A stretch of 63,988 nucleotides of DNA, filler included, from Klebsormidium nitens (GCA_000708835.1; 7 parts of 7 records of this genome joined end to end with filler, not necessarily neighbours in it), one strand, 5' to 3'. Shown: positions 1,497 to 53,026, numbered from the whole stretch's first letter. The notes: a model not told the origin generated them from the sequence alone. Translations and numbers: made by a program.

Positions 1497-2258
1497 CGCA
1501 TGAGCTTGCTGAACAACAACTGGTCGAACGCAGGCTTGTCCAAATCCCAAGTCAGCATCACTGCGCATCTGAAACCGAAAATACTCGATCTATATGCAAA
1601 AAGCGTGTACAATCAACAAGCAACACTCATGCATGTAAAGCTAAAAGACGACGTGTTTTCATCAAATTCACAAATGATCAACTTAGGGCTTTTCCAGGTA
1701 TAATGCGAGCAACTACATTAACGACAACCATTAGTCCTTCACGGATTATCATTTCGGACAGAGACAGTGGCATCCTGAAACGCCTCGCCCCGGATGGTTG
1801 CAACACCTTGACAAGACGGCCGCAGAAACGTCGTCGGAAATGGACATGAGGCTCAGGGAGCCTCGGACCACTTATACTTTTCTTTTCTTTTTGCGCATCT
1901 ACTTTCTGACACTCGAGTATGATGCTTTGGCATCAGAAAGAGTGAAAGGATGTAGCGCTCGAATATAAGTGTCAAAAAAAAAAAAAGCTCAACCGCGATG
2001 CGGTGTGAATGCTCGGTTTTGCCTTCTGATGAGCCTTCTTTTAGGGGAGGCTGCCTTCTGAAGTGCTTGTTAACCCATCAGATAAATAGTGGTTTATCGC
2101 AGCGAAAAAACACACAATCGGAGCGTCTCAAACGCGTGCTCAAAGATCATCGGACGGCTGTTGCATGTGTAGAGCCGGTCAGCCAGCGTATAAATAACTA
2201 CCGGGCACTCGTCCAGGCTATGTTCCCCTGAGAAACTTAGACCGGTGCTAAGCGGTGA

Positions 2259-2677
2259 AATCAGTGTTCGTGGCGAAACCTAATATTGATTTCGCCAATT
2301 AGGTTTGCGCAGTAGTTTGCGCATATTCGCGCAAACGGAGGAGTTTGCGCAGCTTGGCGAAATTAAGCGCGGCCGCGCGGCCGCGCATAGGCGCGTGGGC
2401 ATAAAAGGCCTGTGTCAATAAGTGACATTCTGGGCTCCGGTCGCAGTTACATAATTTGACTTTGTATGAGCACTTTGCCTTGGAGGCGGCTGATAGGTGG
2501 GTTAGCGTCAGGACTCAGACCATCACCTATTTTGGCACCAAGTCATAGGCTGAGGCGCCCGAAATTGCATAAGCATACAGATAATTTCGCCAATTTCGCC
2601 AATTAGGGTGAATTGGCGCTTCAGCAATTAGTGTTTGCGCATTTCCGAAAACAATTTCGCCACATGGACAATCAGTG
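2259..2677. mobile_element. Possible non-autonomous DNA transposon (MITE, hAT-like)
   Basis: An 8-bp direct repeat AATCAGTG lies at 2259-2266 and 2670-2677. An inner inverted repeat GTGGCGAAA/TTTCGCCAC sits near both ends, with many internal TTCGCCA and TTTGCGCA motifs in both orientations. Confidence 0.35.
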
Positions 2678-3307
2678 GTTGTAGGGCTCTAGGGCCTATG
2701 AATCCTGCTACCGGTTGTCAGTTGCGGGATGCTCAGTCGACACAATTCTGCCCGGTACTGATATAAGCAGGCTGCCACTGCCCGTTTCCCGCGTGCAAAA
2801 TCGTAATCGTACTGGTAGACAACATGCCATCGGACGGCTGCGCTTTCCAATCAAGATGCAAGATACGCGCGGCCGGGCGACGGGTCCCCGCAAGCTCTAG
2901 GACGCGGGCATGATCGCAGGGGTTTGCCGCACGTATAAGAGGTCACGTGCGGAGATTTGGACGTACAAAAATATTTTCGCGTCATCGAACTCCAAAACCC
3001 GTCGAAAAATGGAGTCGAGTAATTTCATACCTGAACTCACTCAAAATGCACGTTCGATGCATAAAATCTGCTTAACTGAGTGATCCAGTCTGGAGCGCCA
3101 CTTTACCCCAAAACCAAACGCCAGTTCTAATAACGAGAGCTCGTTTTTTAATAATTAAAAAAACCGAGCTAAAAAGCGGGCCCCCAATGAGTAACTAGGC
3201 GTGCCTGCTACCGTACGCAATGATCATCTTGGTATGCGCCAGCAGGTACCGGCCGAACTAGATCAGAGCGAATTTCGCAATCCTGATCTCGCAAATGGGC
3301 GAAGCAG

Positions 3308-3327
3308 AAAAAAAAAAAAAAAAAAAA
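3308..3327 (+). repeat. Poly(A)20 tract about 150 bp upstream of the TIM9 start
   Basis: 20 consecutive A bases. Confidence 0.9.
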
Positions 3328-3473
3328 GCAGTTAAGCAGTCTTCTCTTTTGATCAGCTCGGAAATCAGGAGTCTCGCTGTTGACAGAGATCTCTACCGTT
3401 TCTGAGAGTTTCTCTTGACCAGTTTTGTTGTACAGGAGGCGACTTGCAGCATCTGGTCATAATATCCGCCACG

Positions 3474-4705
3474 ATGGATCCCAGCGAATTGGAGGGGCTG
3501 GCGGAGGAGGACAAGATCAAAATGACGCAGATGGTGGAGCAGATGCAGATGCGGGACAGGTGTGGCGTCCATTGCTTCGCACATTCATTGGATCTGCGCC
3601 ATATTTTTTGCGCCACTCTATCTTGGATTGGTTCTGTTCGCCACCGCTTGTAGCATTTTGATCACCTTTGTAGGAATGATTCTCGCATTTTCACAGTCAT
3701 GTCTAGTAAATGCCGAGTTCCGTTCGATGGTAAGGTGGCAATTGATTGACGAGCTGTGGCTGTCAGAGATGTTGCTTTTGGGCCGCCATTTGTTTGTGAA
3801 GCGACACCCTCTCTGGTTGGGAGTTTGTATGGTGAGTTGGAGGGCTTCGTAAGCGTAGTGCATACTGCGAGAAGGTGGGCAGTGAATTCATTTTTTGCTC
3901 CAGCAGTACGTCGCTTCCGAATTCTGGTTTCGAAAGGCGGTGGGCTTGGCAAGTGGTGGAAAAGGAATGCAATCCTGTCAAACTGGCCTGACAAGTTCTT
4001 GCTTACCTCAGGGGGTGCTCTGAGCAGTCAAGTTAATTCTACTTTTGGTGCCACCTCTCAGCCATTACTTCACCGATGAGCACAGATAGAAGCTGCATTT
4101 GTTGAGTACATCGCATGAGAGGAACGCACAATCTGGCCCTTTACATGGAGAATTTCTCATGCTTCACCCAGGATCACAGGGTGCAGAAGTGGACTCTGCT
4201 TTGATAATCTGCTTTGACTCGGTTCCTCATGACCTGTATGAACCTCTCGAGGGACGTTAAAGTGGTCTTGCATAATGTTAGCTCCATGATGTGGCACTTT
4301 CACATCCTGATGAGTGTCCGGTCACACCTTGAAAGCAAAGTATCTGTAATCAGCCCCCTATTTGCTGCCCATATACCTTCCATATACCTGGCCGCGGGGC
4401 TCCACTTTAGGTTATTAAATCTGCCGTTGAAAGCACCCTCTGATGAGTCAGCTTTTCTACGATATGACTTTTGTCGTCCCATCGGTAGTTTCTGAAAAGT
4501 GTTCTTCTCTGTTTGCAGCCTGCGTATGTACAACAACCTGGTGGAGAAATGCTTCAGCAACTGCGTGGATACGTTCCGGAGAAAGACGCTAGACAAGGAC
4601 GAGGACAAGTGTATAAGAAGGTGCGCCGAAAAGTTCTTGAAACACACGGCTCGGGTCAGCATGCGCTTCGCAGAGTTGAACTCGGGGGCCGCCACACCTG
4701 ACTAA
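3474..4705 (+). CDS. TIM9: Mitochondrial intermembrane small Tim chaperone TIM9; exons 3474-3559 and 4519-4705
   Basis: The spliced protein MDPSELEGLAEEDKIKMTQMVEQMQMRDSLRMYNNLVEKCFSNCV...DKCIRRCAEKFLKHTARVSMRFAE has the twin CX3C motif. The intron is GT-AG and in phase. Confidence 0.93.
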
Positions 4706-42061: not shown

Positions 42062-45000
42062 CCCCCCCAGCTCGGCAACCTGACCAGCCTCACCAGCCTC
42101 GACCTCTCCTCAAACCACCTCTCCGGCCCAATCCCCCCCGAGCTCGGCCGCCTGACCCGACTCACCGAACTCTTCCTTACAGCAAACAACCTCTCCGGCC
42201 CCATCCCCACCGACCTCGGCCGCCTGACCAACCTCCGCACCCTCTACCTCCTTAACAACAGGCTCTCAGGCACCATTCCCCCCGGGCTCGGCAGCTTGCC
42301 CAACCTCAAATTCCTCTCCCTCTCAAGAAACGGCCTCTCCGGCCCCATACCCTCCCAGCTCGGCAACCTGACCCAACTCATTTATCTTGACCTCTACAGC
42401 AACAACCTCTCGGGCACCATTCCTCCCGAGCTCGCCAGCCTGACCCAACTCAGCGAACTCGAGCTCTCCTTCAACGATCTCTCCGGCCCCATACCCCCTG
42501 GGCTGGGCAGCCTCACTAAACTCTTCACACTCGTGCTCTCCTTCAACAACCTCTCCGGCCCCATTCCCCCCGAGCTTGGCAGCCTGATCAACCTCATCTC
42601 CCTCGACCTTTCTGCCAACAATCTCTCCGGCTCCATTCCCCCTGGGCTGGGCAGCCTCAAACTCATCCAACTCGGGCTCTTCAGCAACAACCTCTCCGGC
42701 CCCATTCCCCCATTGCTAGGCAACCTGACCAGCCTCACCAGCCTCGACCTCACCCCCAATGACCTCTCTGGCCCTATCCCCCCNNNNNNNNNNNNNNNNN
42801 NNNNNNNNNNNNNNNNNNNNNNNNNNNNNNNNNNNNNNNNNNNNNNNNNNNNNNNNNNNNNNNNNNNNNNNNNNNNNNNNNNNNNNNNNNNNNNNNNNNN
42901 NNNNNNNNNNNNNNNNNNNNNNNNNNNNNNNNNNNNNNNNNNNNNNNNNNNNNNNNNNNNNNNNNNNNNNNNNNNNNNNNNNNNNNNNNNNNNNNNNNNN
43001 NNNNNNNNNNNNNNNNNNNNNNNNNNNNNNNNNNNNNNNNNNNNNNNNNNNNNNNNNNNNNNNNNNNNNNNNNNNNNNNNNNNNNNNNNNNNNNNNNNNN
43101 NNNNNNNNNNNNNNNNNNNNNNNNNNNNNNNNNNNNNNNNNNNNNNNNNNNNNNNNNNNNNNNNNNNNNNNNNNNNNNNNNNNNNNNNNNNNNNNNNNNN
43201 NNNNNNNNNNNNNNNNNNNNNNNNNNNNNNNNNNNNNNNNNNNNNNNNNNNNNNNNNNNNNNNNNNNNNNNNNNNNNNNNNNNNNNNNNNNNNNNNNNNN
43301 NNNNTCGGCCGCCTGACCGGACTCCTCACACTCAGCCTTGCATCAAACAACCTCTCCGGTCCTATCTCCTCCGAGCTCGGCCGCCTGACCCGACTCTCCT
43401 ACCTCGACCTCTCATCCAACGGCCTCTCGGACCCATCTCCTCCGAGCTCGGCCGCCTGACACAACTCACCAGGCTCGACCTCTCCTCTAACGACCTCTCC
43501 GGCCCCATCCCGTCTGAGTTCAATCATCTGCTTGCCATCAGTACCCTCAACCTTAGCTTCACAGGCACGACCTGCGAAGCGCTTGACTTGTCTCGTATGA
43601 GAAAGATCACGAACCTGGGCCTACCTGACGCGCCACCCCCTTCTTTCGAGCACAACAATCTGACCTACTTATCGCTATCCGTGAACAACAACAATCCCAC
43701 CAGACACCTGGATCTCTCGTCTGTGCCAGAAACTTGCAAAATCGTCAACATGACAGGCTCGCACCCCAATCTCGAGAGCATCCGGTTCTGGGGAGCTTGC
43801 GAGAAGGGCTGCATTGTGAGCTTGGCGGGCACCGGGGCGAGATTGTCCCGCAGCACTCGCAGGAAGGTGTGCTTGAGTCCGATATCGGTCTTCCTCTCGG
43901 GGGACATTCCCATCCCGCTGTTCGAAGGACCTCAGGCTTCTCGCCGGTTTTTGGGCGTTCTCAGAAACGCGCAGGGGAACTACACCTTGGCAGACCCGAA
44001 CTTTGTGGATCTGATCGACCTGGGTCGCGAAGGCAGAGCGTACACGGGGGTCGGCTTTTCGAGGGTCCAGGCAGGCAATCTCTGCGGCAACCCCGAGGCG
44101 AAGGTGGTCACGGCGCTCGTCTTCGTGGTATTCGCCGTCCTCTTGCTTCTGGGGACCATCTCCATCCTCCTGGTGGCCCGCTGGCGCCGTCGAGTCCAGG
44201 GTGCAGGGCTCGAGACTGCAGATGGGGGGCGACTCGGGTAAGTCGTTGGGATGGTTTTGGAGTTCGAAGACGTCTCTCCTCCTGCCCGACTTTCAGCACT
44301 TTGAATCTCTGGTGATCTGGTCAAGCCGCCGTGATGAGATTTGTTGTTTGGAAGGGATTCTTAATCCTTGCGCATGCCTCCGCAACTTCAGGCTTGCTGG
44401 GCTTTACCTGTGGGGAGCTGCAATGGGCGTCCTGCCCGTCGTGGACGTCATCACCGACTTTCTGGTGCTGAGCGAGGTCTGGGGGGCGTGGCCGATGTGG
44501 CTGGTGCTGGCGTCGGTCTGCGTGCCGTTCTTATGGGCGTCTTTCGCGGTGGCCAAGGCCTGGTCGTCGAGCGGGAGTCCGGTGCGCGGGTGGAAGGGAT
44601 TGCGGGTCAGATGGCTGTGGCCACTGCCGGCTCTGAGTGATGAGCAGCCGAGGACGTCGGACGGGTGGTCCCCACGCGCCGCGGTACTGGCAATCCTGCT
44701 GCTGCCCCTGAGCCTCTTGGGGGTGCTCGTCCAGGACCTGCTGTCCGTGGCGGAGAGGTTCGGGCTTCATCTGGCGACCGGGGACCGGATCGTCGTTTTC
44801 GAGCGCTATCACGAGTCTCGGGTGGTCGTCGAGTTGCTCCTGGAGTCGCTGCCCCAGGCGGTGTTCCAGACCGGACTGTACATAATAGGGAGCTCGAGGG
44901 CGACCCGCATCTACATCGACCAGCGCATCTTCGTGCAGTCCATCGTGGTGTCGCTGTGCAGTCTGTCGGTGCATTACTGCACCATGCTCTGGGAGGCGGT

Positions 45001-45136
45001 GTACGAGGGCAGGTCGCTTTTCCGGGTGTTCTTGGACCGATTCAATGGTGCGGGGCAGCCGAGTCTCGTGACGCTGACCACCGAGCCGAGCGCGGACGAA
45101 GAAGTGGAGGGGTTGAGTCACAAGGTGGCGAGTTGA
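42062..45136 (+). CDS. LRR receptor-like protein fused to an XK-related-like multipass domain, copy 1; 5' end missing, gap 42784-43304, apparent frameshift ~43428, intron 44238-44391
   Basis: 24-aa plant-type LRRs (LxxLxxLxLxxNxLSGPIPxELG) are followed by a juxtamembrane domain with GNLCGN and the TM helix ALVFVVFAVLLLLGTISILLVA plus RWRRR. A phase-2 GTAAGT...CAG intron leads into a domain with DVITD and ELLLESLPQAVFQ. Confidence 0.85.
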
Positions 45137-45794
45137 AGAAAGTATTCAAGCGATGGGTTGCGACCCTTTGATAAAAAGAATCTAGCGTCCACACGGTAAA
45201 TAAATCACGCGCGTCCTTACCCCTCCGGACGTCAAAACAAACAGTCCCGTCTGCCACTAGGCTAACAACATGTGGTCTTATATCCTAAGGTTCCGTTCTT
45301 TTTCGAGCATGCGATTCAAACGTAGTTTTCGTTGATAATGGTCCATTGTTCGACATAGAGCCTCAGATTGGGACTTGAAGCGGCAACTCCATAATTGCTA
45401 CGCAAGCTTGTAAATGTACATGGCATGCCTTGTGTCATGGATTCGGTCGTGGATCATGGATGTGACTCCGATACAGCAAGCTCCATGATGTGTTCACGTT
45501 CGCGGACTGGGATTGCCAGATGTCGAATACCCGCTCTTGGTTTTTCGCGGTCGCGGTCATACCATTTACTACTATTATGGAAGTGCGCGCACTCGCGAAC
45601 CTTTCGGAAAATGATCATTTCTTCAGCGCGCGCTCGCGGACCAGTCATGTCACGTGGCAAACCGAAACGCGAGTCCGCGCGCCTGTACTGATTTGTAGGT
45701 GTCAGGCTGCTGTGAACATTGTTTCCGGCAATGTGTCCGTACTGCTCGTCTGCTACTCACGGGTGCATTGGCTCCCCAGGCGGGATAAGTGTTG

Positions 45795-46551
45795 ACATTT
45801 GCCTCTCATGACGACGTCATGATGTACGGACACCTTCGATGACACAGAATGCTCGGCACTTCTGGACCACATTGCCCTGCACCGCGCACTGAATGTCCAC
45901 ACATCTTGAAAGGAAACAATACACGAATCAGGTACAGATACATTGTGATTGGCAGAGGTTCCAAGACTAGCCAGGGCGGACGATCCCGCTTCCTTCCACG
46001 GAGTTCCCCTCCTCGAATGTTCCTCTTGGAGTGGAGAAGGATCTCCCTCTTTGAATTAAAAAGCCCACCACATTCACAGCGCTCCTGGAACTACTCAGTG
46101 GAGGAATGGCCTTGGAAAGTGGACGGTGAATATATCTGGGAAGCGCTGCTCTCTGCTGCCTCGAGGAGCCAACTACAAGGAGATGCGTCCGCATCATTGA
46201 TCTGTATCCACACGTGAGTCCATATGCGAAGTTTTCTGCCTAGGCCCGGCGGTATATTGTACCCCACTTCCTGGGTCATGTGCTCATTCCTTGGAATACT
46301 GCTTCATTCCTTGAAGATTCTTTGTAGCATTGCAATGTCACCTGATGATGATTGTACTGCAGAATTTGGAGCGGCATGTCGCAGCAGGCTTTTGACGAGC
46401 TTATGCAAGGTTCTTTGTGGTCGTCATGTGCAAGGGTGTGTGGTGCAGACTTGGGGGTGGAATCTGTGACCCATCGCCCTTCATGATAGAGGGAGCCAAT
46501 CGCTTGAGCTGGGGCTTATTCAATTACCTTCTTGCACTTTCAGGTATCACC
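45795..46551 (+). repeat. Upstream/5'UTR region of LRR copy 2, duplicated at ~51120-51855 upstream of copy 3
   Basis: Long shared blocks include GTCATGATGTACGGACA..TTCGATGACACAGAAT, CTAGCCAGGGCGGACGATCCC, GGGAAGCGCTGCTCTCTGCTGCCTCGAGGAGCCA and TTGAGCTGGGGCTTAT. Both end in an acceptor-like (C/T)AG|GTAT(C/T)ACCATG. Confidence 0.9.
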
Positions 46552-49500
46552 ATGGCCCCCATACCGGCTGGAACCCTGCGCTATACTTTCTCAATATTGG
46601 GGCTCCTCTGTGCATCGGGGCTCTTGAGAGGAGTATGGTCCGCAACCATGGAGGAGATCGACGATCTCGTCCAGGGCCCACTCTGGAACCAGACGAGCAT
46701 CATGATCAGCGGCGGCGAGTTATCCGGCCGGATCCCCCCAGAGCTCGGCGACCTGACCAACCTCACTTCCCTCGACCTCTCCTACAACAACCTCTCCGGC
46801 CCCATCCCACCCGAGCTCGGCCGTCTGACCCAACTCACCGAACTCTCCCTCTCCTCCAACCGACTCTCCGGCCCCATCCCTCCTGAGCTCGGTGACCTAA
46901 CCGGACTCACCAACCTCTCCCTCTCCTACAACCGCCTCTCGGGCCCCATCCCCCCCGAGCTCGGCGACCTGAACGCACTCACCAGCCTCTCCCTCTCCTT
47001 CAACGAGCTGTCTGGCCACATTCCCGTCGAGCTTGGTCGCCTGTCCAACCTCACCCTTCTTTACCTCTTCTCCAACAACCTCTCTGGCCCCATCCCCGCC
47101 GCGCTTGGCCGTCTGTCCAAACTCACCAGCCTCGACCTCTACAACAACAGCCTCTCCGGCAACATTCCCCCCGAGCTCGGCAGCCTGTCCAACCTCACCT
47201 TCCTCTACCTCCCGATCAACCGCCTATCCGGCAACATTCCTCCCGAGATCGGCCGCCTGTCTAACCTGAACCACCTCTATCTCTCTATCAATCCCCTGTC
47301 CGGCACCATTCCCCCCGAGCTCGGCAGCCTGTCCAATCTCACCTTCCTCTTCCTCGCCTCCAACAACCTCTCCGGCTCCATCCCCGCCGAGCTCGGCCAT
47401 CTGACCAGACTCACCAACCTCTCCCTTTCCAACAACAGCCTCTCCGGCAGCATTCCTTCCGCGTTCGGCAACCTGTCCAACCTCACCTTCCTCGACCTCT
47501 CCTACAACGACCTCTCCGGCCCTATCCCCGCCGAGCTTGGCAGCCTCACCAGACCCACCCTCCTCGACCTCTCCTACAACGACCTCTCTGGCCCTATCCC
47601 CGCCGAGCTGGGCAGCCTTGCCAGACTCGCCCTTCTCGACCTCTCCTACAACAACCTCTCCGGCCCCATTCCCTCCGAGCTGGGCAGCCTGACCGGCCTC
47701 ACCCAGCTCTACCTCACGTCCAACGAACTCTCCGGCATCATCCCCCACGAGCTCGGCCGCCTCTCCAACCTCATCAGCCTCTTCCTCTACTTCAATAGCC
47801 TCTCTGGCACCATTCCCCCCGAGCTCGGCAGCCTGTCCAACCTCACCCTCCTTCACCTCTCCAACAACCGCCTCTCCGGCCTCATCCCCGCAGANNNNNN
47901 NNNNNNNNNNNNNNNNNNNNNNNNNNNNNNNNNNNNNNNNNNNNNNNNNNNNNNNNNNNNNNNNNNNNNNNNNNNNNNNNNNNNNNNNNNNNNNNNNNNN
48001 NNNNNNNNNNNNNNNNNNNNNNNNNNNNNNNNNNNNNNNNNNNNNNNNNNNNNNNNNNNNNNNNNNNNNNNNNNNNNNNNNNNNNNNNNNNNNNNNNNNN
48101 NNNNNNNNNNNNNNNNNNNNNNNNNNNNNNNNNNNNNNNNNNNNNNNNNNNNNNNNNNNNNNNNNNNNNNNNNNNNNNNNNNNNNNNNNNNNNNNNNNNN
48201 NNNNNNNNNNNNNNNNNNNNNNNNNNNNNNNNNNNNNNNNNNNNNNNNNNNNNNNNNNNNNNNNNNNNNNNNNNNNNNNNNNNNNNNNNNNNNNNNNNNN
48301 NNNNNNNNNNNNNNNNGTCTGACCGGCCTCACCATGCTCCACATCTCCTCGAACGACCTTTCCGGTCCCATCATCCCCGAGCTCGGCAGTTTGACCAATC
48401 TCTGGTCCCTCGACCTCTCCTCCAACGACCTCTCCGGCCTCATTCCCCTCGAGCTCGGCAGACTGTCGAGTGCCAAATTACTACTTCTCGACCTCTACAA
48501 CAACAACCTCTCCGGCCCTATTCCCCCTGAGCTCGCTCGCCTAAGCGGCCTCGTGGGCCTGTACCTCCACAACAACAGCCTCTCCGGCCCCATCCCCCCC
48601 GAGCTCAGCCGCATGGGCAGGCTCGGTGCCCTGGACCTCTCCTTCAACGGCCTCTCCGGCCCCATCCCCCCCGAGCTCGTCAACCTTACCAGACTCACCA
48701 CCCTCGACCTCTCCAATAACGATTTATCCGGCCCCATCCCGCCTGAGTTCGGTCGTCTGCTGCGCATCGAAACACTCAACCTCACTGGCACGGATACGTC
48801 TTGCAAAACGCTTGACTTGTCCCGTATGATAAATATTACGAACCTAGGCCTTCCTTGCTCGCCACCCCCTTCTTTCGCGCACAACAATCTGACCTACGTT
48901 GCGCTATCCGTGAGGAGCAACATTTCCACGAGACACCTGGATCTCTCGTCGGTGCCAGACTCCTGCAAGATCGTCAACCTGACGGGCCCGCACCCCGATC
49001 TCGAGAGCATCCGGTTCTGGAGAGCTTGCGACGAGGGCTGCGTCGTGAGCGTGGCGGGCACGGGGGCGAGACTGTCTCGCAGCACTCGCAGAAAGGTGTG
49101 CCTGGGTCGGATATCGGTCTTCCTCTCGGGTGATATTCCCGTCCCGCTGTACGATACATCTGGGGACTTCTTGGGCGTTCTCAGCAACGCGCAAGGGAAT
49201 TACGCTTTAGCGGACCCGGACTTCGTGGATCTGATCGACCTGGGGCGCGACGGGAGGGCGTACACGGGGGTCGGATTCTCGAGGGTCCAGGCGGGTAACC
49301 TCTGCGGCAACCCCGAGGCGAAGGCGGTCACGGCGCTCGTCTTCGGGGCATTCGCCGTCCTCTCGGTGGTGGCGACCATCACCATCGTCGTGGTGGCCCG
49401 CTGGCGCCGTCGAGTCCGAGGTGGAGGGCTAGAGTCTGCAGTTGGGGGGCGACTCGGGTAAGTCGTTGGGATGGGCGCTCGATTTCGAACACGTCTCTCC

Positions 49501-50353
49501 TCTTGAGTATCAGCACTTCACATTTTTGGTGATCTCGTCACGCCGCCGTGACGATATTCGTTGTCTGAAAGGGATTTTGAATTCTTGCGCTTGCATCCGC
49601 AGTTTCAGGCGTGTTGGACTCTACATGTGGGGAGCTGCATTGGGCGTCCTACCCGTCGTTGACGTCGTCACCGACTTCCTGGTGCTGAGCGAGGTCTGGG
49701 GGGCGTGGCCGATGTGGGTGGTGTTGGCGTCCGTCTGCGCGCCGTTCGTGTGGGCGTCTTTCGCCGTTGCTAAGGCCTGGTCGTCGACCGGGAATCCAGT
49801 GGGCGGGTGGAAAGAGTTGCGTGTGAGATGGTTGTGGCCGCTGCCGGCTCTTGCCAACGAGCCGCCGAGGACCACGGACTGGTGGTCCGTGCGCGCCGTG
49901 GTCGTGGCGATCCTGCTGCTACCCATGGGTCTCTTGGGCGTGCTCGTCCAGGACCTGCTCTCCGTGGCGGAGAAGTTCGGGCTTCATCTGGCGACCGGGG
50001 ACCGGATCCTCGTCTTCGAGCGCTACCACGAGTCCCGGGTGATGGTCGAGCTGCTCCTGGAGTCCCTGCCCCAGGCGGTGTTCCAGACGGGACTCTACGT
50101 CATTGGGAGCTCGAGGGCGACCCGCATCTACATCGACCAGCGCATCTTCGTGCAGTCCATCGTGGTGTCGCTGTGCAGTCTGTCCGTGCATTACTGCACC
50201 ATGCTCTGGGAGGCGGTGTACGAGGGCAGGTCGCTGGTCAGGGTGTTTCTCGACCGGTTCGGGAGTGCGGGGCAGCCGAGTGTCGTGACGCTGACCACCG
50301 AGCCGAGCGCGGATGCAGAAGTGGAGGGGTTGAGTCAGAAGGTGGCCAGTTGA
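46552..50353 (+). CDS. LRR receptor-like protein fused to an XK-related-like multipass domain, copy 2 (most complete); gap 47895-48316, intron 49458-49608
   Basis: A signal peptide ([30 protein letters not shown]) precedes about 16 LRRs before the gap and 6-7 after it. A TM helix plus RWRRR follows, then an in-frame splice into GLYMWGAALGVLPVVDVVTD...ELLLESLPQAVFQ...SIVVSLCSLS. Confidence 0.88.
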
Positions 50354-51639
50354 AGATCGTTGTGAAAATCAGCAGGGGACTCGAGGTAGATTGGTTGCGA
50401 CACTACGATAGCCCGTGATTAGCGCTAACATGGTACAAAGGACACTTGCTCAACCTCGCCCTTTTCGGACCTTCAAACACTCCGGCCGTCTGCCACTATA
50501 CTAGTGGATGTCATAGTATCTCGATGATCGTGAGCAGGAGATTCTGACTTCTTGTTGCCATTCTCCTTAAGTGGTTCATTTTCGACGTAGAGGCATCAGA
50601 TTCGGATTGACACCATTAATTCGCAGAGGCATGCTACGTGCGTACGTTTGCGCATACACTGTGGTATGTGTCAAGTATAGCTTCTTGATCCGCGCCGCCG
50701 ACGGTGCACGTGTGCGAGATCGGCTGTTAAGTCGCGCGGTCGCGATTACACCCTTGTAGTGGAGTGCGCGATCGCGAACAATCGTGCCAAGTGGCCAATT
50801 TTCAACCATGGGTCCCGCGCATGTCAAATATTATATCGCGCGCGCAAGCTCGCGGACAAATAATGCCACGAATCAGATGAGAACTCATTTTACAAATGCG
50901 ATAACCTACATTGGATCTAGCGAAAGAGAGCTCTGAGCGGGTCAGTCCTGACTGCCTTGACCAATAATACCAAGCTCGCTCAAGCTTGTTTGTCTGTTTT
51001 TGCAGTGTCAGGCTCCTTCGAATCTTGTCTCCGGCAGTTTGTCCGTATTGCTTCGTACAGAGCTCCACAGGGTCCGCCCTGTGCGTTGGCTTCCGAAGTC
51101 GTTGACGCCGGATCAATGTCGACACCTACCTCTCTCTTGACAACGTCATGATGTACGGACATTTTCGATGACACAGAATCGAAAGGAAACAATAAACAAA
51201 CCACCGAAGCAAAAATGTTGCGTGTGTGCACATAGGGTCATGTTCTTAGCCTAGCCAGGGCGGACGATCCCCCTTATTCCAGCGAAATTCCCCTCCTCAA
51301 ATCTTCCTCTCACAGCGAAGAAGGATCTTCCTCTTTGAATAAAAATCCCATCACGTTCACAGCCCTGCTGGAACAGCTCAGTGGGCGAATGGCCTTGAAA
51401 ACTGGACGGTGAACATCTCTGGGAAGCGCTGCTCTCTGCTGCCTCGAGGAGCCAAGTACAAGGAGACGCGTCGGCATCATTGATCTGTATCCACACGTGA
51501 GCCCATATGTGAAGTTTTCTGTCTAGGCCCGGCGGTATATTGTACCTCATTTTCAAGATTATGTGCTCATTCCTTGGAATACCTGTTGATTCCTTGAAGG
51601 TGGTTTGTAGCGTTGCAATTTCACATGATGATGACCACT

Positions 51640-51660
51640 TTTTAAGGTTTTAGGGTTTTA
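51640..51660 (+). repeat. Interstitial telomere-like insertion TTTTAAGG TTTTAGGG TTTTA
   Basis: Present upstream of LRR copy 3 and absent at the homologous site upstream of copy 2 (~46350-46362). Confidence 0.6.
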
Positions 51661-51855
51661 CCTCAAAATTTGGAGCGGCATGTGGCAGCAGGCTCTTGAC
51701 GAGCTTACGCAAGGTTCTTTGTGGTCGTCATGTTCAAGGCGGTGTAGTGCAGACTTGGGGTGGAATCTGTGACCCATGGAGCTGCATGGTAGAAGGAGCC
51801 GGTTGCTTGAGCTGGGGCTTATCTCTCTTTGCTTCTTGCACTTTTAGGTATTACC

Positions 51856-53026
51856 ATGGCCCCCATACCGGCTGGAACCCTGCGCTACACAATCCCAATA
51901 TTAGGGATCCTCTATGCGTTGGGGCTCTTGAGAGGAATATGGTCCGCAACCATAGAGGAGATCGACGACCACGTCCGGGGCCCGCTGTGGAACCAGACAA
52001 GCATCATGATCAGCGTCAAGTTATCAGGTCGGATCCCCCCAGAGATTGGCAACCTGACCAACCTCACCTCCCTCGACCTCTCCTACACTAACCTATCTGG
52101 CCCCATTCCTCCCGAACTTGGCCGCCTGACCCGCCTGACCAGCCTCGACCTCTCCTCCAACGACCTCTCTGGCCCCATCCCCCCCCGAGCTCGGCAACTT
52201 GACCTTCCTCACCTCGCTCTCCCTCTCCTACAACGAGCTGTCCGACCCCATCCCCCCCGAGCTCAGCCGCCTGACCAACCTCGCGGTTCTCCACCTATCA
52301 TCCAACAACCTCTCCGGCTTCATCCCAGCCGGGCTTGGCCGCCTACCCAAACTCAGGTCCCTCGACCTTTCCTCCAACGACCTCTTTGGCCCCATCCCCA
52401 CCGAACTCGGCAGCCTGACCAGACTCGAGTACCTAGAGCTTTACGACAACGGCCTCACCGGCCTCATCCCCCCCGAGCTCGGCCGCTTGACCACACTCAG
52501 GTCCCTACAACTTTTTGACAACGGCCTCTCCGGCCCCATTCCCCCGGAGCTCGGCCGTCTAACCGGCCTCACCCTGCTCTCCCTCGGCTCCAACAACATC
52601 TCCGGCCGAATTCCTCCAGAGATCGGCAGCCTGAGTGCCCTCAAGTGGCTCCGCCTCTCCTCCAACGGCCTCTTCGGTCCCATCCCCGCCGAGGTCGGCA
52701 GTCTGTCCAACCTCTCCAGCCTTGACCTCTCCGGCAACGGCCTCTCCGGCCCCATCCCCCCCGAGCTCGGCAACATGACCGCCCTCACATACATGCTCCT
52801 CTTTTCTAACGAGCTCTCCGGACCGATCCCCCCCGAGCTCGGCCGCCTGACCCGCCTCACCTTCCTCCTCCTTTCTCGCAATGGCAACGGCCTCTCCGGG
52901 CCCATCCCCGCAGAGCTCGGCCTCCTCACCGGCCTCACCGACCTCTCCCTCTCCTTCAACCGCCTCTCCGGCCCCATCCCCCCGGAACTCGGCCGCCTGA
53001 CCGGCCTCACCTCCCTCTATCTCAAC
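51856..53026 (+). CDS. LRR receptor-like gene copy 3, 3'-truncated by the contig end; +1 frameshift in a C8 run near 52179-52186
   Basis: It has the same signal peptide and N-cap as copy 2 ([12 protein letters not shown]...[11 protein letters not shown]). The LRRs continue in ORF 52199-53074 after the frameshift. Confidence 0.85.

Follow-up and report, generated by a model that had tools for sequence, protein, structure and literature searches.

A Klebsormidium receptor family in which leucine-rich repeats are joined to a membrane module resembling one repeat of XK-related proteins

Introduction

What output does a leucine-rich-repeat (LRR) receptor have when a multipass membrane domain, rather than a kinase, follows its transmembrane (TM) helix? 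The question is raised by a locus of the streptophyte alga Klebsormidium nitens that carries three head-to-tail LRR receptor genes, all on the + strand. These genes occupy the piece analysed here, 10,965 bases at positions 42062–53026, counted from the first letter of a joined stretch of 63,988 nucleotides (the window). LRR receptor kinases make their first appearance close to the streptophyte base, which is also where Klebsormidium is placed (PMC10868138). A previous interpretation made from the DNA alone (the sequence-only reading) had proposed that two of the copies splice in frame into a multipass domain equivalent to half of an XK-related (XKR) protein. Our analysis leads us to favour, with some reserve for the explanation taken as a whole, the view that the tandem genes are paralogues, belonging to a family of type-I membrane receptors that is specific to Klebsormidium, and that the C-terminal module of these receptors is a remote relative of the XKR N-terminal domain.

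Results

The LRR ectodomain and the multipass module belong to one receptor

Copy 2 is the sole copy with both ends present, and its frame is open throughout. The receptor is laid out as a signal peptide, plant-type LRRs of 24 residues, a Cys-containing juxtamembrane region, a TM helix with a basic stop-transfer sequence, about 20 further residues and a module of 247 amino acids (aa). In copy 2 these parts correspond to an ATG with a signal-peptide-like N-terminus of 31 aa (46552–46644), an array of 16 LRR units of 72 nt (46723–47894; Tandem Repeats Finder (TRF), and Pfam LRR_1 at E 1e-58), about six final LRRs (48317–48753; Pfam and the TRF 72-nt array), a juxtamembrane ectodomain (48754–49326) ending in NLCGNPEA (49297–49320), which is conserved across the receptor family, and a single TM helix (49327–49398) followed by the RWRRR stop-transfer sequence (49399–49413). 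TRF sets the bounds of the two 72-nt arrays of this copy at 46723–47889 and 48320–48752. About 15 residues after RWRRR the donor GTAAGT opens a phase-2 intron (49458–49608), and the 247-aa module follows (49609–50353, with the stop codon at 50351–50353); in the model it has an inner-leaflet helix and a beta-hairpin besides four TM helices. Pfam found no Pkinase family in the window proteins and, in the copy 2 juxtamembrane ectodomain, no family other than the flanking LRRs. The multipass domain of about 245 aa without a kinase that had been described at this locus is thus borne out. The signal peptide claimed for copies 1 and 2 was seen in copy 2; the 5′ end of copy 1 lies beyond the edge of the piece.

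In copies 1 and 2 the exon coding for the LRRs, the TM helix and RWRRR splices in frame, through GT..AG introns in phase 2, into the multipass domain, and the frame then stays open to the stop, just as had been proposed. The unspliced copy 2 frame terminates at once at a TAA (49459–49461). Splicing in copy 2 is in frame at the AG 49607–49608, the acceptor originally assigned, and likewise at the AG 49601–49602, 6 nt upstream, whose use lengthens the protein by two residues (F-R); the upstream site of copy 1 reads “caa”, leaving the downstream acceptor only. Public contigs over 48800–50400 showed zero intron depth in all four runs, and contigs from two of these (X3 and X9, from two studies and with two organism labels) join 49457 to ~49603/49604. 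KFL_000650330, the nearest paralogue with a name (83% identical), is modelled in GenBank as “...GSRLG-FN-RWALYLWG...”, which likewise corresponds to the upstream acceptor position. The assigned copy 2 acceptor therefore stands as an in-frame site, whereas the relatives use the position 6 nt before it. These contigs, presumably from RNA, bear on the junction in relatives of the locus; in no public run was the locus itself close to complete, the highest share of sampled words being 0.14.

Only about 20 residues separate the TM helix from the module, and the interval holds neither a start codon nor space for a promoter. Between copies 1 and 2 the ratio of nonsynonymous to synonymous substitution rates (dN/dS) was 0.24 for the multipass domain and 0.21 for its membrane core (residues 1–205), values by which the core is judged to be under purifying selection. 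The in-frame splicing, the intron-skipping contigs, a single Klebsormidium subtile open reading frame (ORF) and full-length GenBank models (both described below), together with the dN/dS of 0.24, establish that the fusion of the LRR and multipass parts is real at the level of the family. Although both window copies contain sequence gaps in their LRR arrays, the link from LRRs through the TM helix to the multipass part lies on gap-free sequence, at 48317–50353 in copy 2 and at 43305–45136 in copy 1, where it is broken only by a frameshift. Because the gap-free copy 2 segment runs from LRRs across the TM helix and the intron to the multipass domain, the claim of fusion is independent of the gaps.

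Profile and structure comparisons point to the N-terminal half of XKR proteins

Members of the family alignment were scanned singly against Pfam, where the XK-related family, PF09815, has a gathering score of 24.8 bits. The profile matched the domain of one paralogue (P0055) at E 2.4e-4 and 20.7 bits over profile positions 3–174 of 337, and that of another (P0057, GAQ93027.1) at E 3.7e-3 and 16.7 bits over positions 4–190 of 337; a third family member matched at E 0.031. The first two matches are collinear, cover the whole domain and are confined to the N-terminal half of the profile. No competing Pfam family scored better than E 0.014 in these single-member scans, and DUF2070, PAP2 and IRK were rejected as isolated weak matches (E > 0.04). 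A protein-language-model search (Atlas feature) listed a PF09815 cluster with a score of 0.89, and the same search limited to named clusters returned nothing further. A word-indexed profile search with family profile A1 against 5.8 billion proteins at E <= 10 recovered family members only and no XKR. The nearest language-model neighbours were eukaryotic clusters of ~260–270 aa from Mucoromycota and Foraminifera, which could be free-standing single-repeat XK-like proteins.

Two AlphaFold models were built. Model 1, of the window domain with a 24-sequence alignment (predicted local distance difference test score (pLDDT) 79, predicted template modelling score (pTM) 0.73), places helices at residues 2–28, 34–59, 94–122 (kinked), 137–165 and 177–205. 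Model 2, of a paralogue (P0003) with a different alignment, included the receptor TM helix (pLDDT 82.5 and pTM 0.78 overall, pLDDT 93–96 for the receptor TM helix). Both models predict a beta-hairpin (residues 125–135) in the cytosolic loop just ahead of TM3. In our own reading of the translation and of model 1, the N-terminus of the module following RWRRR and the Lys/Arg-rich loops would be cytosolic, as in XKR N-domains.

VIA-align, run exhaustively against 48,161 representative chains, put XKR proteins at ranks 1–3 for model 1: XKR9 (7p16, Z 10.6, 153 residues at 3.4 Å), XKR4 (9boj, Z 8.8, chain residues 108–358) and XKR8 (8xej, Z 7.7, chain residues 9–185). A second look at model 1 added 7p14 (Z 10.7) and 7dce (Z 9.5). 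The same three XKR chains occupied ranks 1–3 for model 2, with Z of 9.5, 7.5 and 7.2. Pannexin, TTYH, DHHC and Piezo repeats were rejected as the fold for their lower ranks and their shorter or looser alignments. The modelled domain has a single repeat only, with ~205 membrane-core residues, where PF09815 members have two.

Taken together, the sub-threshold PF09815 matches, the VIA-align ranks, the language-model cluster and the motifs described below form four weak-to-moderate lines that support, without proving, a link to XK proteins. We consider it probable that the module and the N-terminal domain of XKR8, XKR9 and XKR4 are remotely homologous, because separate methods agree on the family, and Pfam and structure agree on the same half of it; the Z values alone would be an unsafe basis.

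The module carries XKR-type motifs on its predicted membrane helices

The motif set reported for the window domains, D-V-x-T-D, E-x-x-L-E-S-L-P-Q-x-x-x-Q and S-x-x-x-S-x-x-S, is present as described. The first helix of copy 2 has DVVTD (49661–49675; D18-V-V-T21-D22) and that of copy 1 DVITD. The predicted helix 137–165 of copy 2 has R143 and E147-x3-E151-S152-L-P154-Q155 (50036–50074), with the motif ELLLESLPQAVFQ from 50048 onward, and the next helix has SIVVSLCS (50156–50179), giving S183, S187 and S190. The order and spacing of these motifs agree with those of XKR proteins, and the residue equivalences drawn here follow from that order and spacing rather than from a residue-level structural alignment.

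Experiments give several of these positions a meaning in XKR proteins. Scrambling by XKR8 depends on D26 and D30 on TM1, K/R134, E137, E141 and R183, residues that lie on the helices of the proposed scrambling path (PMC8500837). XKR9 consists of two repeats, each with four TM helices and an inner-leaflet helix; its TM3 has a kink at a conserved PQL and is hydrophilic to an unusual degree, and the acidic cluster of TM1 and TM3 is a hallmark of the family (PMC8298096). Xkr4 has an extracellular Ca2+ site made up of D123-V-G-T-D127, E310-S311 and S339, and E310K gives Ca2+-independent activity (PMC10495444). Both window copies keep D18, D22, R143, E147 and E151-S-L-P154-Q155, and so retain the acidic cluster characteristic of PF09815. 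Among 24 paralogues, T21 and D22 are each present in 18, R143 in 23, P154 in 20 and Q155 in 19. It is supported, though not proven, that the module is a single XK repeat that keeps the buried acidic cluster, with D-x-x-T-D on TM1 and E-x-x-x-E-S-x-P-Q on TM3.

A side observation concerns Glu151 (50060–50062), a possible counterpart of Xkr4 E310, which is Arg in 10 of the 24 paralogues. This substitution recalls, speculatively and by analogy only, the E310K bypass mutant of Xkr4.

The architecture recurs in a Klebsormidium gene family

When the 247-aa domain was run exhaustively with phmmer against 1.84 billion representatives, 56 proteins were recovered; the closest database protein is 83–86% identical to the window copies. 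Named matches all came from Klebsormidium (K. nitens or K. subtile), and the others from JGI, ENA or Logan assemblies. Upstream LRRs were found in all 18 long relatives that carry the domain and were scanned with Pfam, and a kinase in none of them, so that the pairing of LRRs with the multipass domain recurs across the family. Pfam-confirmed LRRs and the domain occur together in the K. nitens proteins GAQ78274.1, GAQ78110.1, GAQ84842.1, GAQ78170.1 and GAQ93027.1; GAQ81742.1 and GAQ79501.1, outside the Pfam-scanned set, are further full-length models with the domain, and at least eight such K. nitens models are present in GenBank. K. subtile TRINITY_DN15503 encodes LRRs and the domain within a single ORF. 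Most of the short database entries with the domain alone stem from prokaryote-style gene calling on contigs of eukaryotes. The search with the juxtamembrane ectodomain of one member (P0032), made for pairing with kinases, returned two family members only.

Public annotation describes family members as hypothetical or, for two in GenBank, misnames them “FLS2”; the exact window genes are probably not annotated, perhaps owing to the gaps. Full-text literature searches found no paper that ties Klebsormidium to XK-related proteins or scramblases, or that describes this receptor design, in keeping with the previous remark that no description of the architecture was known. We class it as an LRR receptor ending in an XK-type single repeat, a novel form built from known kinds, and do not file it in PF09815, because its profile scores fall short of the threshold and it lacks the second repeat.

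Several relatives depart from the common layout. A K. nitens protein (P0008, KFL_010600020) continues from the module into a Sel1-repeat tail (PF08238) instead of the usual short tail, which may reflect a genuine second kind of fusion or the merging of gene models. A protein of 2853 aa (P0067) gave six separate weak matches to module residues 6–33, the first helix with DxxTD, and no clear Pfam family; a TM1-like segment may be repeated there, or the matches may be an artefact of composition. The most divergent modules (P0069, P0071 and P0072) come from metagenome contigs and are without the P-Q and the second Glu. An LRR ORF stands just upstream of the module ORF at 2005–4593 of one such locus (L002, JGI metagenome 3300059835), the two probably forming one intron-containing gene; a further locus (L003) likewise carries the divergent subgroup.

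Discussion

A possible mechanism

If the homology is accepted, a scrambling or ion-path output for the module is a tentative proposal by analogy, to which we give somewhat less than an even chance. In such a receptor an extracellular ligand would be bound by the LRR ectodomain and would pair one receptor with another or with a co-receptor. The pairing might unite two half-XK modules, or it might move the fused TM helix against the module, and either event could open the hydrophilic path along TM1 and TM3 to phospholipid head groups or cations. The receptor output would then be a membrane event, phospholipid scrambling or cation movement, instead of phosphorylation. The full proposal, a ligand-gated XK-type scramblase or cation path with one ancestral-type repeat per chain, in which LRR-driven dimerisation would rebuild the two-repeat unit that a single chain provides in animal XKRs, is drawn by analogy and remains doubtful. 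The suggestions of the sequence-only reading that the family is a ligand-gated scramblase or channel, possibly serves in algal immunity or cell death and would need to oligomerise are likewise conjectures.

Evidence against the reading and rival explanations

A number of observations weigh against the XKR homology or the function proposed from it. Pfam gave no match for the window domains even at E <= 10; all three PF09815 matches lie below the gathering score and only three of the 61 distinct members scanned match at all. Phmmer searches of PDB sequences with the window domain and with the P0055 and P0057 domains returned noise only (uL4m, a lectin) and no XKR, and hmmsearch of the same sequences with family profiles A1 and A4 found no XKR and one methyltransferase at E 1.3. 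The VIA-align Z values of 7–11 are below ~13, the level that is safe from chance resemblance for helical bundles, and the two models, having family sequences in common in their input alignments, are not fully independent. Foldseek, also proposed as a check, gave no match to the PDB at E <= 0.001 with either model. For model 1, XKR4, XKR9 and XKR8 had the top probabilities (0.33–0.57) and TM-scores (0.36–0.40) of the list, at E ~1 and hence not significant; for model 2 the list was noise only, with XKRs outside the top 50. A structure search of the ESM Atlas returned nothing but bacterial entries that are unrelated, at TM < 0.4. The module has only one of the two XKR repeats, and the acidic residues vary among the 24 paralogues, D18 being kept in 15 and E151 as Glu in 9, with Arg in 10. 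The RNA evidence comes from paralogues or relatives rather than from this exact locus, and the public runs are presumed to be RNA. Copies 1 and 3 are frameshifted and copy 2 holds a sequence gap. The mechanism itself is proposed from sequence, models and analogy. The XK-related assignment of the sequence-only reading thus keeps its sub-threshold profile matches, its top structural ranks, its motifs and its single half-XK unit, and lacks a Pfam match for the window domains and significance in Foldseek.

Much of this would be expected if the likeness were a chance similarity of helical membrane bundles and short motifs, the module being a lineage-specific membrane domain. That account draws on the missing Pfam match at threshold, and the missing match of any kind for the window domains, on the non-significant Foldseek result, on Z values below the level of caution for helical proteins, on HMMER profiles that do not reach the XKR sequences of the PDB, and on the restriction of named members to Klebsormidium. 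It is harder to reconcile with three separate methods picking XKR, two of which pick the same half (profile positions 3–190; XKR8 9–185 and XKR4 108–358), with three XKR representatives heading 48,161 chains in both models, and with ordered motifs that resemble experimentally mapped XKR residues; we regard it as rather improbable. Even if the XK-N-like fold is accepted, it need not transport lipids or ions and might serve as a docking or regulatory platform, for example for a VPS13-type bridge-like lipid-transfer protein or a co-receptor kinase, with the LRR part signalling through partners as in a receptor-like protein. Scrambling is shown for XKR8, XKR9 and XKR4 (PMC8298096), while the remaining XK members are listed as orphans (PMC9333335), and XK uses a beta-hairpin of its second cytosolic loop to bind VPS13A at the PH domain (PMC9436381), a loop to which the one with the hairpin predicted by both models is comparable. 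The absence of half of the XKR fold and the substitution of key acidic residues in many paralogues fit this role as well. Against it, the window proteins retain all four acidic residues and the Arg needed by XKR8 and Xkr4 (PMC8500837, PMC10495444), and the purifying selection on the membrane core extends over residues 1–205; we judge a purely docking role unlikely.

There is very little room for the view that the LRR and multipass parts are separate genes or a gene-model artefact, or that the window copies are pseudogenes. The 1-nt frameshifts of copies 1 and 3, the TAA that ends an unspliced transcript and the several domain-only entries would suit it. The single K. subtile ORF and the full-length K. 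nitens models, with upstream LRRs in all that were scanned with Pfam, speak against it, as do the intron-skipping contigs, the short interval between TM helix and module and the mainly prokaryote-style origin of the domain-only entries; the dN/dS of 0.24, the position of the copy 3 frameshift in a homopolymer run and the open frame of copy 2 do so too.

Relation to known systems

On the reading of the module as a remote XKR N-domain, its predicted helix order (TM1, TM2, inner-leaflet helix, kinked hydrophilic TM3, TM4) and predicted cytosolic N-terminus are those of the XK-related proteins of PF09815 (XKR8, XKR9, XKR4, XK and CED-8), with which it also shares the TM1 and TM3 motifs and Ser on TM4; its best structural matches are members of this family (Z 7.2–10.7). 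It differs in having one repeat, against the two of XKRs (8 TM and 2 inner-leaflet helices), in its fusion with an LRR ectodomain and one additional TM helix, in scoring below the Pfam threshold, in showing no caspase-type C-terminal plug and in its streptophyte algal host. Phospholipid scrambling under the control of a C-terminal tail, a kinase, a caspase or Ca2+ is a further mark of that family. To our knowledge the XK-related family has been described mainly from animals. An XK-type core paired with a single-pass protein bearing a large ectodomain is familiar from XKR8 with basigin or neuroplastin and from XK with Kell (PMC8500837, PMC8298096). The Klebsormidium receptors likewise set an XK-like core alongside such a single-pass part; here, in contrast, the partner is covalently fused, lies N-terminal to the core and has LRRs rather than Ig or peptidase domains.

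With the plant LRR receptor-like kinases and receptor-like proteins (RLPs), for example those of FLS2 type, the receptors share the signal peptide, the 24-residue LRRs (LxxLxLxxNxLSGxIPxELGxL), the juxtamembrane Cys region, the single TM helix and the basic stop-transfer sequence. Unlike the kinases, they have no kinase domain after the TM helix, in the window proteins and in the 18 long relatives scanned with Pfam, and unlike RLPs they have the 247-aa multipass module with four TM helices in place of a short cytoplasmic tail; an RLP-like product would come only from an intron-retaining transcript (stop at 49459–49461). Their juxtamembrane ectodomain, unlike that of plant LRR receptors, was found only within this family.

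An expanded family that couples an LRR ectodomain to an XK-like module would show that early streptophytes tried receptor outputs other than kinases. A single-repeat XK module outside animals would bear on the origin of the two-repeat fold and on whether the path of lipids or ions lies wholly within the N-terminal domain, and the family offers a system that might be triggered by an extracellular ligand. If the ligand-gated XK-type proposal were true, the XK fold would be older than animals and scrambling could be wired directly to extracellular ligand sensing; on that view, the Arg that 10 of the 24 paralogues have at position 151 would be a naturally occurring equivalent of the Xkr4 E310K mutant, whose activity is Ca2+-independent.

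Copies, gaps and flanking features of the locus

The unit at 43346–45139 is 85% identical in DNA to that at 48574–50356 over 1.8 kb. Copy 1 begins, truncated at its 5′ end by the edge of the piece, with an open frame of plant-specific (PS)-type LRRs (42062–42783; TRF period 72 nt, 10 copies), followed by an N run (42784–43304) and the final LRRs (43305–43587), which in three-frame translation contain a 1-nt frameshift near 43430 (GLSD|PISSELG). The exon ends with the juxtamembrane ectodomain, the TM helix (44107–44178), RWRRR (44179–44193) and a short linker (43588–44237 in all), a region with ~80% protein identity to its copy 2 counterpart. The intron (44238–44391; GTAAGT..CAG, phase 2) is identical to that of copy 2 at 122 of 155 aligned positions, and the XK-N-domain-like multipass domain of 247 aa with its stop (44392–45136) has 87% protein identity to that of copy 2. 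Copy 3 comprises an ATG, a signal peptide and an LRR array (51856–53026); its 3′ end is truncated at the piece edge at 53026, so that any C-terminal domain would lie outside the piece, and an extra C in the run 52179–52186 shifts its frame.

The N runs of copies 1 and 2 (the latter at 47895–48316) both sit in same-strand arrays of 72-nt LRRs. Repeat arrays of this kind are a usual point of failure of short-read assembly. The reading frame agrees on both flanks of each gap at the nominal gap lengths. Equivalent LRR positions are 588 nt apart across the copy 1 gap (8 x 72 + 12) and 486 nt apart across the copy 2 gap (6 x 72 + 54). Because the LRR register is thus off by 12 nt in copy 1 and by 54 nt in copy 2 (equivalently, 18 nt short of a full repeat), the N lengths are inexact if the hidden repeats are regular. 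Continuity of the LRRs across both gaps is plausible but unproven.

An Rfam scan of the piece gave no match. The conserved region upstream of copy 2 (45958–46547), probably promoter and 5′ untranslated region (UTR), is 84% identical to 51242–51851 upstream of copy 3. Copies 2 and 3 have a donor, GTGAGT (46212) and GTGAGC respectively, and an acceptor, tttcag and ttttag, directly before the ATG, a pattern that suggests a conserved 5′-UTR intron of ~330 nt in copy 2 (46212–46543) and copy 3 (~51497–51847).

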